From Octopus bimaculoides (Eukaryota), in the NCBI RefSeq assembly GCF_001194135.2, contig NC_068984.1:140322937-140365507 (forward strand): a stretch of DNA of 42,571 bases, read 5' to 3'. A model generated the notes under the pieces. The model did no database searches. It had not been told where the DNA came from and worked only from the letters and a program-made list of their open reading frames with translations. Each line of letters begins with the position of its first letter. The stretch's first letter is position 1. This document shows, piece after piece, positions 2,116 to 14,733 of this stretch. The position numbers were made by a program, and so were the translations under genes.

Positions 2116-2208
2116 TCTCGCGAGACGGATTCGAACCATCGACCTAAGGATAACAGACGTGAACAATCGCACTACAGTCCTCCGCTCTACCAACTGAGCT
2201 ATCGCGAG
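2116..2208 (-). tRNA. tRNA-Tyr(GTA): tRNA-Tyr(GTA) gene 1; intron 2152-2171 (TGCGATTGTTCACGTCTGTT)
   Basis: Cloverleaf: acceptor CTCGCGA/TCGCGAG, D-stem GCTC/GAGC, anticodon stem GAGGA/TCCTT, GTA anticodon, intron after position 37, T-stem GATGG/CCGTC, discriminator A73, downstream T-run. Confidence 0.97.
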
Positions 2209-2683
2209 TTACAGGATCTGCGGTTGCGAAATAGATATGTCATAAGAAATGTGAAATTGAAGCTACAACTGTTTGTTAAAGAGAGAGTGGGGGGGGGGAG
2301 AATGTGAGTGGTGAAAGAGAAGGGAGAGGATGAGGAGGGTGCGTAGAGAGGGAGGACAAAGGGAATGAGAGTGGGAGAGAGCGGTAACGGGGAAGAGAAG
2401 TTGAAAGAAGGTGAGAGGGGGTAAAAACAGTGGGAGGAGTAGAAGGAGCAGAAGAAAGGGGAAAAGAAAAGATAACGCGATGAGAGGGGAGGAGGAGAAT
2501 GTAAATGAAAGCAGGACGGAAGCGGAAAGAAAAGACGAGAGAAAGTGGGAGGGTTAGAAGGAGGAGAAGGTTAAAAGACGGCTNNNNNNNNNNNNNNNNN
2601 NNNNNNNNNNNNNNNNNNNNNNNNNNNNNNNNNNNNNNNNNNNNNNNNNNNNNNNNNNNNNNNNNNNNNNNNNNNNNNNNNNN

Positions 2684-2726
2684 AACAAACTACAGTCCTC
2701 CGCTCTACCAACTGAGCTATCGCGAG
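2684..2726 (-). tRNA. tRNA-Tyr(GTA): tRNA-Tyr(GTA) gene 2, partial: 5' exon (2690-2726) and intron start; remainder in the N gap 2584-2683
   Basis: 5' exon is identical to the other copies. The upstream flank is homologous to that of gene 3. Confidence 0.85.
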
Positions 2727-3351
2727 ACACGGAAACAAAAATTCTGAAATAGTTTAGTCATAAGAAATGTGAAGTTAAAATTACGCCAGCTGTTTGGTAT
2801 TATGGAGGAGGAGGTAAGTGGAATAAGGAAAGTTTTAGAGGGGAGGGGGAATGTTAGTATGTAAGATATGTAAGGAAACGGGGACGGAATATAGCAGTGT
2901 TTAGGAAAAACCTAGAAACTTGTGTGTCTCTATCTATCTATCTATCTATCTATCTCTGTTTGTTTATCTCCCTCCTATCTCTTTCGCTCTCTCCCTCTCT
3001 CTCTTTCTCTCTCCCTCCCCCCTCTCTCTCTCTCACACACACACACACGCACACACTTAGTATGGAAGTGGGGTGTCAAATTACGAATTTTTTTTTTTCT
3101 TTGTTTGATATGAAGATTCCCAAAAATAAAAGAGTTATGAGGGATTATATGGCACGTTTAAAGAAGCATTGCGCCCTTTGGAGAAATCAATTCTAGCGAT
3201 TCCCTTCGTTACAACACCACAACTATTAAAGTTGAAGCCGTCTTTCGTAGAATTGGAACTCAAAGCATAAAGAGAAATAACGAAATACTTCTCAACGGTT
3301 TAGCTCAGCAAAAAAAATAAAAATTTTTAAAAATTAAAAAAAAATTAAGAA

Positions 3352-3444
3352 TCTCGCGAGACGGATTCGAACCATCGACCTAAGGATGTCAGAAGTTTAA
3401 TTACCAACTACAGTCCTCCGCTCTACCAACTGAGCTATCGCGAG
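3352..3444 (-). tRNA. tRNA-Tyr(GTA): tRNA-Tyr(GTA) gene 3; intron 3388-3407 (TTGGTAATTAAACTTCTGAC)
   Basis: Full cloverleaf, T-stem GATGG variant, downstream T-run. Confidence 0.97.
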
Positions 3445-3863
3445 ACACGGAATCAGTGGTTCTCAAATAGTTTAGTCATAAGAAATGTGAAGTTAAAACT
3501 ACGCCAACTGTTTGGTATTATGTGAGCGAGGGAAATAGTGAGGAGGAGTAGGAGGAGGAGGAGGAGGAGGAGGAGGAGAGTGGAATAATGGAAGATTTAG
3601 AGGGGAGGAGGGAATATGTTAGTTTGGAAGACATTTAAGGAAACGGAGACGAAGTATAGCAATGTTTAGGAAAAACTCGGAAACCTTTCTATTTTATCCT
3701 TCAATCTGTTTGTCCATCTGTCAGTCTATCTCTGTCTATTTATCGTCCTGCCCCTCTCTCTTTCTCTCTTTCTTTCTGTCCGTCTCTCTCTCGTTTTATC
3801 TAGCTATCTATATGCAGGTATGTATTTATCAGTCTGTTTAAGTATACAGGCAACTCTTTTGAC

Positions 3864-4031
3864 CAGGGCCGGCCCTAAGGTTGCCGGTGCCACGGGCAAG
3901 CTGAACTTCGGCGCCCTTACAAGTATAATTTTTGTAAACTTTCACAGAGAGGAAAACTGAAAATGCAGACTAAAAAGCCCATGGCGCCCCCGAGCGGCTG
4001 TCCGAGGTGCCTGTACCTGGAGCCGGCCATT
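3864..4031 (+). mobile_element. hAT-type MITE, decayed
   Basis: Starts CAGGGCCGGCCCT and ends GCCGGCCATT. Flanks CTTTTGAC / CTTTTGCT form a 6/8 match to an 8-bp TSD. Same family as 34290-34438. Confidence 0.6.
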
Positions 4032-4454
4032 CTTTTGCTTCTGCCGATGTATACAAATATCTGGCTGTCTATCGTTCCCTGAATGAACAGGTGTCTATCT
4101 GACAGTCTATATATACAGGTAGTTATGTATATACAGGTATCCGTTCGTTGATCTGTCTTTGTACAGCAGTCTAAAGGATTGTCAATCTAGCTTATACTGG
4201 CAGGTGTCTATCTGTCAGCTTCTTTCTCCATGTATATGTCTAGCTGTCTGTCTGTCTATCTGTCGGTCTCAGTACACAAGTGCCAAGCTATTATTCTAAC
4301 CAACAGTAGCCTTAACTTCACATGTGTAGCATGTATTCAGCTGTTATTCTGTTACATCGACTGCGGAAACAAAACATGACTAGAAAAGTTATATCCACGC
4401 CATTTTTGTTCTGAACATAAAAATTTAACGAGATCCGCCTAAATAAATCATCCT

Positions 4455-4657
4455 TACTACTCTAGGCACAAGGCCTGAAATCTTGGGGGAGGGGAAGTCC
4501 AGTTGATTACATCGACCCCAGTGCTCAGTTGGTACCTAATTTATCGACCCCGAAAGGATGAAAGGCAAAGTCGACCTCGGCGGAATTTGAACTCAGAACG
4601 TAGAGACAGACGAAATACCGCCAAGCATGTTTGCTTACAATTCTGCCAGATTACCGC
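4455..4657 (-). mobile_element. SINE family B (Nin/Deu-domain-like)
   Basis: Reverse complement of GAGTTCAAATTCCGCCGAGGTCGACTTTGCCTTTCATCCTTTCGGGGTCGATAA, repeated many times in the window. Confidence 0.8.
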
Positions 4658-5012
4658 GTAAGTAAACAACCGCAAAGCATTTCGTTTGGCGCTCCAACGA
4701 TTCTACCAGTCACCACCATCTGCTGCCTTTTTCTAAAACCTTTAAACTTATTTACAATTTAACAAAAACACTGTTACAAAGACGCACAGACACACACGTG
4801 GTCAGAATAAACATAAAGGCAGAGACACAAACATGGGTGTCAGAACTCCCACTATCACTCACTCACTCTCTCTCTCTCACACACACACACACACACATAC
4901 GCGCTCGCACGCACACAGAGTCATAGTGAGGCCGACTCCTTCTCTCCATATCACTCTTCCTTCTCCTCTCCGTGTTTCTCTTCTCACGCAAGAAATCAGC
5001 TGCTGTTAACAG

Positions 5013-12862: not shown

Positions 12863-12955
12863 CTCGCGATAGCTCAGTTGGTAGAGCGGAGGACTGTAGT
12901 AGTAACTGAAAAATCTGACATCCTTAGGTCGGTGGTTCGAATCCGTCTCGCGAGA
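12863..12955 (+). tRNA. tRNA-Tyr(GTA): tRNA-Tyr(GTA) gene 7; intron 12900-12919 (TAGTAACTGAAAAATCTGAC)
   Basis: Full cloverleaf, GGTGG variant, T-run at 12963. Confidence 0.97.
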
Positions 12956-13134
12956 GTAAGGCTTTTTTCATTTTTTTTTTTTTTTACTCAGTATTTTGGT
13001 TCGTAAACTTTTCTCAAACAGCCGAGCCGTGGAGCATTATATATAATACATACGTGCTGGTTGAGAAAGAGAATAAATATTATTTTGTTGTATATCGGGA
13101 GGTTCATTATGCCAATAATAGACACACGCACTAA

Positions 13135-13224
13135 GGCGCCGAGCTGGCAGAAACGTTAGCACGCTGGGCGAAATGCTTAGCGGTATTTCGTCTGTCGTTA
13201 CGTTCTGAGTTCAAATTCCGCCGA
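13135..13224 (+). mobile_element. SINE family B, head fragment
   Basis: GGCGCCGAGCTGGCAGAAACGTTAGC...GAGTTCAAATTCCGCCGA. Confidence 0.85.
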
Positions 13225-13441
13225 TAGCCATAGAACGATAGACATCGATATTTCAATATCGTTTTAGCTCTCGTCAGTATCGCATATTCGACTCGTCACG
13301 AAACGAAATGAATCGCTGGTCTGAGACACATATGCAAATAATGCAAAGTCTAATTTGTACCCACCCCTGTAGGAATATATACAAGTATATCAGTGGCGAT
13401 ATATAAAATATCAAAAATAATATCCATTTCTTCGCAAAGTA

Positions 13442-13502
13442 TCGTTTTGCCCTACGGACCTCTGCGTCAAGAACCCACACGCTTTCTCTGTGCCACTCTG
13501 CT
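13442..13502 (-). pseudogene. tRNA-iMet: Heavily decayed initiator tRNA-Met pseudogene; anticodon lost
   Basis: Minus strand AGCAGAGTGGCACAGAGAAAGCGTGTGGGTTCTTGACGCAGAGGTCCGTAGGGCAAAACGA. It shares its ~350-bp 5' flank with the copy at 12087-12159. Confidence 0.7.
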
Positions 13503-13934
13503 CAGCCAATGCTTACATATAATGTATCAGTCCTTATATTGTCTGTTCTGGGTTACATCACTTCTATTACATCATCCATCATATGTTATTTATTATTTAT
13601 TTTATTTATTTCTATGCATTGGACTGCTTCAGATGTACGAAATAATATAACAACACAAACCCTAATGCAGCACTGGGATGTTTATTAACTGACTGAAAAG
13701 GCGACATTTTACTCTGCCGATACTCCGACATTCACATTTGACAAACCGTAGATATAGATCGATTCGTCGCAAATTTTTCCGGGTGTTTCTTCATTTGCCA
13801 TTTTCAGATCGACAAAAACCAATCAATTCCAGCGAAGCATAGCAAGCGAATTTGCTGGTTGGGAAGGGGGGGGTCTGGCTTTTTTTTTGTGAAAACTGAA
13901 TAAAATATAATTGCGTAATTACAATGAGCAAATA

Positions 13935-14333
13935 GGTGCAGACCGTGGCTGTGCGATAAAAAGCTTACTTCCCAACCTCATAGTTCCAGGTTCAGTCCCA
14001 CTGCGTGTCACTTTGGACCGGTGTCTACTACTATAGCTTCGGACCTATCAAAGCCTTGTGAATGGATTTGGTAGACGGAAACTGAAAGAAGCACGTCATA
14101 CATATGTATGTGTATGTGTCTATGTTTGTCTCCTCCACCACCCCAGCTTGACAACCGATGCTGGTGTGTTTACGTCCCCGTAACTTAGCGGTTCGGCAAA
14201 ATAGACCGATAGAATAAGTACTAGGCTTACAAAGAATAAGCTCTGGGGTCGATTTGCTCGACTATAAAGGCGGTGCTCCAGCATGGCCGCAGTCAAATGA
14301 CTGAAACAAGTAAAAGAGTAAAAGAGTAAAGAG
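13935..14333 (+). mobile_element. SINE family A, full length, inserted into the second iMet-Tyr duplication unit
   Basis: Head to (GTAAAAGA)n tail; absent from the homologous first unit. Confidence 0.9.
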
Positions 14334-14640
14334 TATTAAGAAGTAGGTACGTACTGTGCTCTACCTTGCGTACCTTAGCCACAATTTCTTTGACTGTCTG
14401 TATGGGTGTGCGTGTATGAGTGTGTGTGTGTGTGTGTGTGTGTGTGTTAATGTATGCATATGTGATTGTATGTCGTCTGTAAATGAAACAAAACGTTTCG
14501 TGTCGTTCAATAAGTCTTGTCAGTCCTGTATAAAATAGACGCGCGGTTAATTAATGCTAATTAGTAGAAAATGAGTAATATTCAAGATTGGATTGCGCCA
14601 ATTCAGGTCTTAGTATTTATTTGACAGGTTGGTAAGTGTT

Positions 14641-14733
14641 CTCGCGATAGCTCAGTTGGTAGAGCGGAGGACTGTAGTCTGACTTTAAATGCCTGTTATC
14701 CTTAGGTCGGTGGTTCGAATCCGTCTCGCGAGA
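14641..14733 (+). tRNA. tRNA-Tyr(GTA): tRNA-Tyr(GTA) gene 8; intron 14678-14697 (TCTGACTTTAAATGCCTGTT)
   Basis: Full cloverleaf, GGTGG variant, downstream T-run. Confidence 0.97.

Follow-up and report, generated by a model that had tools for sequence, protein, structure and literature searches.

The stretch of Octopus bimaculoides DNA analyzed here (RefSeq assembly GCF_001194135.2, contig NC_068984.1, positions 140,322,937 to 140,365,507 of the forward strand; 42,571 nucleotides (nt), the whole of which is called the window) contains a cluster of genes for tyrosine transfer RNA, tRNA-Tyr(GUA), each interrupted by a short intron. Seven complete genes, named g1, g3, g4, g5, g6, g7 and g8, were detected by pattern matching and with the Rfam model RF00005, which scored all of them between 57 and 59 bits (gathering score, 29). 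Every complete gene was 93 nt long, with an intron of 20 nt between a 5' exon of 37 nt (CTCGCGATAGCTCAGTTGGTAGAGCGGAGGACTGTAG) and a 3' exon of 36 nt. The anticodon was G34-T35-A36, and the intron occupied site 37/38 in all seven cases, as 20 extra bases between CTGTAG (ending in G37) and ATCCTT (beginning with A38). A box and B box sequences (TAGCTCAGTTGG and GGTTCGAATCC) were present, and runs of 5 to 10 T, the terminator of RNA polymerase III (Pol III), were located within 15 nt downstream of every gene. Judging from their sequence, the seven genes would be expressed. When ARAGORN was run in bacterial mode, intron-bearing genes were miscalled as Asn, Leu or undetermined because of the intron.

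On the minus strand, g1 (2116..2208) carried the 20-nt intron TGCGATTGTTCACGTCTGTT and was followed 7 nt downstream by a terminator of nine T, g3 (3352..3444) carried the intron TTGGTAATTAAACTTCTGAC, and g5 (5901..5993) carried TGTGGTTAATCATGGCTGTT. On the plus strand, the introns were TGTATCAATTCATGTCTGTT in g4 (5053..5145), TGGTGATATACTTAGCTGTT in g6 (8871..8963), TAGTAACTGAAAAATCTGAC in g7 (12863..12955) and TCTGACTTTAAATGCCTGTT in g8 (14641..14733), the trailer of the latter entering an assembly gap (14784-15347). These strings were exactly those listed in a preliminary description of the locus, 20 nt each, and as stated there all seven started with T and had CTG at positions 16 to 18, with TT at the end of five and AC at the end of two. 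The same description had called the exons invariant, which has to be corrected for T-stem position 50: it was A in g1, g3 and g6 and G in g4, g5, g7 and g8, and would form either an A-U or a G-U pair with U64.

Incomplete copies were also found in the cluster. A 5'-truncated pseudogene, psi5b (5732..5801, minus strand), was located about 100 nt downstream of g5; its exon parts were identical to the consensus at 42 of 52 positions with zero insertions or deletions (indels), and its 20-nt intron (TATGATAATTCATGTCTGTC) matched that of g4 at 15 of 20 positions despite an exon divergence of 19%. A partial gene, g2p (2684..2727, minus strand), consisted of the 5' exon and the first six intron bases (TTTGTT) and was cut by an assembly gap at 2584-2683. 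The far side of this gap was unrelated CT/GA-rich DNA, in which neither the 3' exon of g2p nor homology to the trailer of its sister unit was found. Because of the gap, g2p was left out of all counts and no conclusion reads across it. The 3' end of a further gene (GAATCCGTCTCACGAGA plus a T-run) persisted as a solo relic at 11311..11335 on the plus strand.

Homology among the copies spanned only from about -75 to about +20; beyond -75 most copies could not be aligned, hence the neutral flanks are saturated. An upstream block of approximately 75 nt, which has the core TTCACATTTCTTATGACTAAACTATTT and, near -25, the TATA-like CTATTT, was common to g1 (2209-2283), g2p (2728-2802), g3 (3445-3519, minus strand), g4 (4978-5052) and g5 (5994-6068), and is probably a Pol III promoter element. 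Identity from -60 to -31 among g1, g2p, g3 and g5 was 79-97%, computed column-wise on a MAFFT alignment; a weakly gap-penalised global alignment of the upstream flanks was uninformative, with shuffled sequences reaching about 77% identity. A different upstream sequence was common to g7 and g8; with only about 67-73% identity there, these two genes are not recent duplicates, as they had been called earlier to be corrected here. Two other origins of the cluster were rejected: an assembly artefact, given that the seven flanks were all different, and retroposed or short interspersed nuclear element (SINE) copies, given that the tRNA-Tyr genes retain introns and terminators.

For a broad comparison, metagenomes were scanned using a generic Tyr pattern for animals and plants, which yielded 133 genes with 117 unique introns of 10-23 nt. 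A pattern built from the acceptor stem and intron of the window genes had no match in the metagenome scan, nor did a pattern of both exons in genome contigs. An additional cluster was reached by translating the antisense strand of a gene and searching a protein collection, a search that was not exhaustive. This contig from the European Nucleotide Archive (ENA), ERZ21867824:ctg119543l (L123 and L124; hereafter the ENA relative), contained at least 11 intact Tyr genes in a dense cluster, with a mature sequence identical to the A50 form of the window. Since no interspersed repeats were common to the window and the ENA relative, the latter is a distant species. Its introns were 20 nt long in all seven copies with fully canonical exons, while four exon-variant copies had introns of 17, 17, 21 and 21 nt. 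As in the window, its canonical introns had G at position -3 (counted back from the 3' splice site), a pyrimidine (Y) at -5 and middles that varied, and they lacked TTTT; unlike those of the window, they started with A, T or G, several had UGG instead of CUG at -5 to -3, the middles were richer in A, and the cluster included the 17- and 21-nt variants and different upstream blocks. Cloverleaf pairs were all standard in the 14 canonical sequences, seven from each genome.

The conserved bases of the intron are known splicing determinants. In all 14 canonical 93-nt genes, C32 pairs with the G at intron position 18 (I18) and G34 pairs with I16, with G-C and G-U alternating as they should in a real pair, whereas U33 faces I17 as U-U in ten genes and as U-G in four. 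The preliminary description was right in assigning I18 to the pair with C32 that the tRNA splicing endonuclease (TSEN) uses, since this base precedes the 3' splice site by 3 nt and is able to pair with C32; the splice site itself falls within a bulge of 3 nt formed by I19, I20 and A38. A proximal base pair and an invariant 3-nt bulge have been described in TSEN substrates (PMC10485636, PMC6614914), and according to a review of TSEN the anticodon-intron helix alone is ordered in cryo-electron microscopy maps and the proximal pair alone is conserved (PMC10485636). In fly reporters, the Tyr helix is naturally weak, and both strengthening it and unpairing it fully reduce splicing (PMC6614914), so that the invariant C16 and the non-pairing U17 can be understood as parts of a helix that must pair, but weakly. 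Fly pre-tRNAs have an invariant 3-nt bulge and a fixed distance of 6 nt between the proximal pair and the end of the exon (PMC6614914), and the register 32-34 leaves the same bulge and the same spacing in the window genes. Of the 117 unrelated Tyr introns in the broad sample, 79% had G at -3 and 69% had Y at -5, while A or T was present at -4 in 79% and T at I1 in 67%; CAG, CTG, TTG and TAG (Y-W-G at -5 to -3) together accounted for 62%, and the CAG and TAG introns of other taxa fit the register 32-34 only. C16 and T17, which had been presented as less explained, thus belong to the anticodon-intron helix and to a combination that is common in eukaryotic Tyr introns.

Formation of pseudouridine at position 35 depends on the Tyr intron, as the preliminary description held and as stated in literature cited in PMC12168002; the same paper cites a report that this modification is independent of intron size (Choffat 1988). 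Within the intron itself, I1 pairs with I12 in 13 of the 14 canonical sequences (U-A in ten, A-U in three) and I2 with I11 in nine, with three pair types. These positions give a weak hint of a mini-hairpin abutting the 5' splice site, weak because three introns that are related to each other account for the A-U cases.

Middle positions 2 to 15 of the introns were compared. The window introns were identical on average at 5.05 of 14 positions, against 3.87 in shuffles (P=0.002) and a random expectation of 3.9-4.0, and they are thus paralogous, related by descent but close to saturation. Between the window and the ENA relative, no significant similarity of the middles was detected (mean 4.47 vs. 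4.16, P=0.16; best pair 10 of 14, P=0.07). TTTT was absent from 18 introns (2.8 in shuffles, P=0.03) and from 116 Tyr introns of other eukaryotes (5.6 expected, P=0.002). The claim that positions 2 to 15 vary freely therefore stands as far as the near saturation is concerned, but not for the avoidance of TTTT and the tendency of I1 and I12 to pair. The fast turnover of the middle, also considered less explained, amounts to saturation at about the neutral rate, the distal flanks being likewise unalignable. tRNA loci mutate 7-10 times as fast as the genome does on average, and divergence of their introns correlates with that of the flanks (PMC6130373). The intron middle is thus a case of drift at a high mutation rate, bounded by terminator avoidance.

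Two subgroups could be recognized among the introns: g1, g4, g5 and psi5b had 7-10 of 14 positions in common, and g3 and g7 had 7 of 14 plus the AC end. The grouping of g3 with g7 conflicts with that of the flanks, in which g7 goes with g8, and all four combinations of exon state (A50 or G50) and intron class (TT or AC) were present; both patterns suggest gene conversion among the copies or, alternatively, recurrent mutation. Concerted evolution could account for a larger part of the picture, if repeated conversion kept exons and length uniform and shuffled intron segments, which would explain why neighbouring genes have unlike introns. In addition to the four combinations and the discordant groups, one pair of genes in the ENA relative (L123 4332-4424 on the plus strand and 8803-8895 on the minus strand) is in line with this proposal, being about 99% identical from -75 to +93 within distal flanks of 79% identity and 15 gaps. 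Nevertheless, conversion would homogenise the introns too, yet seven different ones persist, and a recurrent A/G transition could produce the four combinations. We therefore regard concerted evolution as a possible but rather doubtful general explanation; conversion between copies probably occurs, and it supplements the explanation preferred here, of fixed exons and drifting introns, rather than replacing it.

The constancy of intron length was evaluated against the alignable flanks, where 204 mismatches were accompanied by 26 gap openings. At least 28 and 26 substitutions (at least 54 in total) are needed to explain the introns of the two genomes, and for this number the flank ratio predicts about 7 indels, while none was seen in canonical copies. 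Because indels are rarer in introns than in flanks, mild selection against changes of intron length is likely. Pseudogenes psi5b and L124 17366 keep 20 nt in spite of 12-19% exon divergence, and the case of psi5b, at 19%, implies that mutational inertia also contributes. The strict length proposed in the preliminary description holds for the seven window genes, yet 20 nt is a lineage-typical, modal length and not a universal one: introns in genes with the same acceptor stem ranged from 15 to 21 nt, including 20, 19 and 20 nt in JAYKCR010049302.1 (GCA_035092605.1), 18 and 18 nt in JBCBFK010000037.1 and 15 nt in JAMJIN010000532.1.

Inertia might even suffice, if all copies descended from one ancestor with a 20-nt intron and indels had remained rare because transcription-associated damage mostly causes substitutions, with zero selection on length. 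The two pseudogenes of 20 nt would then be expected, as would the single 1-nt indel among five genes aligned over the proximal 60 nt upstream, and the length variants of the ENA relative occur only in exon-changed copies, as if both kinds of change accumulated with age. Such an explanation has to face the deficit of indels in canonical copies (none, where the flank ratio gives about 7) and the recurrence of the same modal length in two genomes without common repeats or significant intron similarity, and descent alone appears improbable to us. The opposite possibility, that the exact length of 20 nt is under real stabilising selection in this lineage and in at least one distant genome with the same mature tRNA-Tyr, may have its basis in a modular precursor (a 12-nt hairpin closed by I1:I12, a 3-nt linker, a 3-nt helix strand and 2 bulge bases) or in what the excised intron requires, for example a length suited to circularisation by the ligase. 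We consider it unlikely, yet if true it would be a constraint unforeseen by current TSEN models, which treat the intron body as disordered and its size as irrelevant. Should exactly 20 nt hold genome-wide, intron length would be a selected trait of pre-tRNA-Tyr that structural models do not explain. Every length variant of the ENA relative sits in an exon-changed copy. The only part of these results possibly worth following up is that each canonical copy of two unrelated genomes has exactly 20 nt in spite of a complete turnover of the sequence.

A functional reading of the introns had also been put forward, according to which each gene frees a distinct, barcoded 20-nt RNA, linear or circular, that base-pairs with targets, its length and ends being set by the needs of the small RNA. 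There is precedent in the tRNA intronic circular RNAs (tricRNAs) released from fly and worm tRNA introns (PMC4536317) and in the free introns of tRNAs (fitRNAs) of yeast (PMC13079951, PMC12168002), and both the exact 20 nt in the 14 canonical copies of two genomes and the two-sided change at I1:I12 would agree with it. Several results speak against it, however. The middles are near saturation among paralogues and show no significant similarity between the two genomes, the decaying pseudogene psi5b keeps the same length, and in yeast the 14-nt Tyr intron is not detectable as a free RNA (PMC13079951). Moreover, if the sequence mattered, selection would have difficulty in maintaining seven unrelated barcodes on a single isoacceptor. 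Reverse-complement matches of the introns in the 42-kb window were at most 9-12 nt long and did not exceed shuffled controls, in a test of low power. Barcoded intron RNAs are accordingly very improbable in our judgement. Window introns and tricRNAs or fitRNAs share their origin, TSEN excision of a 37/38 intron, and the window genes have the proximal pair and the 3-nt bulge on which the formation of tricRNAs depends; the documented functional cases concern longer introns or those of other families, unlike the ones in the window.

The explanation we hold to be probable is a Pol III-transcribed tRNA-Tyr(GUA) cluster, dispersed or tandem, with fixed exons, drifting introns under few splicing constraints and a lineage-typical intron length. 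Purifying selection would hold the mature tRNA nearly fixed, probably helped by ectopic gene conversion, and the 37/38 intron would be kept because TSEN and intron-dependent modifications act on the precursor. In that precursor, G at -3 would pair with C32 as the proximal base pair, C at -5 would pair with G34, U at -4 would provide a deliberately weak middle pair, and the 3' splice site would be placed in the 3-nt bulge. TTTT would be barred from the intron as a terminator for Pol III, and a small hairpin closed by I1:I12 may be constrained. The other intron positions, about 12, would drift at a high, transcription-boosted neutral rate, close to saturation, and length would stay at 20 nt through indels being rarer than substitutions and length changes being mildly selected against.

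Some observations weigh against this explanation. The register of the helix is ambiguous, as CUG can pair with U35-A36-G37 in 90% of cells, compared to 76% for C32-U33-G34; the alternative register, U35-A36-G37 with I18-I16, has a slightly better fit in the 14 canonical genes and is the one predicted by RNAfold. Part of the flank indel rate comes from low-complexity DNA, which may inflate the number of indels expected in introns, and exactly 20 nt in all 14 canonical copies of two genomes is tighter than any known TSEN requirement would predict. Furthermore, divergence is greater in the intron middles than in the proximal 60-75 nt upstream (for g3 and g5, 2 of 14 vs. 41 of 58 identical), and in the L123 pair the introns differ at 3 of 20 positions against about 1 of 75 upstream. 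We read the excess of intron divergence over upstream divergence as constraint on the promoter block, in competition with faster intron change or conversion, because distal flanks are as saturated as the introns; the L123 pair itself has the appearance of a fast-changing intron inside either a conversion tract or a promoter block under selection.

Overall, the cluster represents a known kind of tRNA-Tyr gene family, and an ordinary one, with a pattern already familiar from flies, humans and plants. In flies, Suter and Kubli reportedly described in 1988 identical mature tRNA-Tyr with introns mostly of 20-21 nt in several sequence classes, and are said to have used the intron differences to measure expression gene by gene. 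Drosophila melanogaster resembles the window in having about ten tRNA-Tyr(GUA) genes, introns at 37/38 and a C-G proximal pair in all intronic tRNAs (PMC4536317, PMC6614914). It differs in that one Tyr intron, of 113 nt, yields an abundant tricRNA, a long variant without counterpart in the window, and the 3' end of the window introns, CUGUU or CUGAC, is unlike that of the Drosophila Tyr family. Human Tyr introns measure about 16-21 nt, a wider spread than the 20 nt of the window. As in the window, the human and plant tRNA-Tyr families have short introns in all copies that differ between paralogues (van Tol and Beier 1988; Arabidopsis tandem Tyr arrays), and plant-type and animal-type Tyr genes of the metagenome sample showed the same between-paralogue pattern.

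The preliminary description stated that paralogous Tyr introns vary in other animals. In the broad eukaryotic sample, clustered paralogues of the same length and different sequence were common: on contigs with at least two Tyr genes, intron pairs of different sequence were equal in length in 13 cases and unequal in 5. In contrast to the 20 nt of the window, the typical length in this sample varied by lineage (10-23 nt), and 10 of the 12 introns in one animal-type group were 13 nt long. The seven distinct introns can serve as ready tags for which Tyr copies are transcribed, a valid proposal of the preliminary description, although an old practice and of modest practical value. The cluster also offers a clean comparative case for the bases that TSEN substrates require: a G at -3 and a Y at -5, together with a middle pair that is weak and the absence of four consecutive T.

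Other contigs retrieved in the comparison had features of their own. JAYKCR010049302.1 is a 1.7-kb contig whose ends repeat each other (unit of about 1.56 kb), with three Tyr genes, each with a TTGG...CCA hairpin and CAG at -5 to -3 in the intron, and two other tRNA genes; it is a tandem tRNA array. JBCBFK010000037.1 and JAMJIN010000532.1 are short contigs in bacterial metagenome-assembled genomes (MAGs; Pseudomonadota, Chromatiales) that carry eukaryotic intron-bearing tRNA-Tyr, almost certainly as host contamination of bacterial bins. Two IMG/VR contigs, L001 (548-650) and L002 (4470-4580), one of them labelled a giant-virus MAG, contained a tRNA-Tyr gene with a 37-nt 5' exon identical to that of the window, a different intron (about 26 nt) and a different 3' exon, with a second intron-bearing tRNA directly after it. 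A giant-virus origin was rejected, the match to the window being restricted to the 5' exon. No Pfam-bearing genes were found at the ERZ21867824 and GCA_035092605.1 loci.

No protein genes were evident in the 42-kb window, and none of ten open reading frames from it was present in the protein collection. The window was rich in microsatellites, gaps and a SINE-like repeat of about 420 bp, of which there were at least 15 copies in 42 kb with 74-93% identity (e.g., 1672-2090, 6623-7041, 13945-14328, 30036-30465 and 38937-39341) and which was absent from 40 kb of the ENA relative. Copies started 25-35 nt downstream of g1, g6 and the relic at 11311, a proximity to Pol III genes that suggests insertion beside them or co-duplication. 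Between 14784 and 27193, six gaps of 388-686 nt occurred every 2-2.8 kb, several of the large ones edged by TG/CA, GA or TA microsatellites, and further tRNA genes could be hidden inside the large gaps. At 483-879, a 30-bp unit (CCGCGATGTACTGAGGGCGCGATAGGTGAA) was present in 13 tandem repeats with an 85% match.

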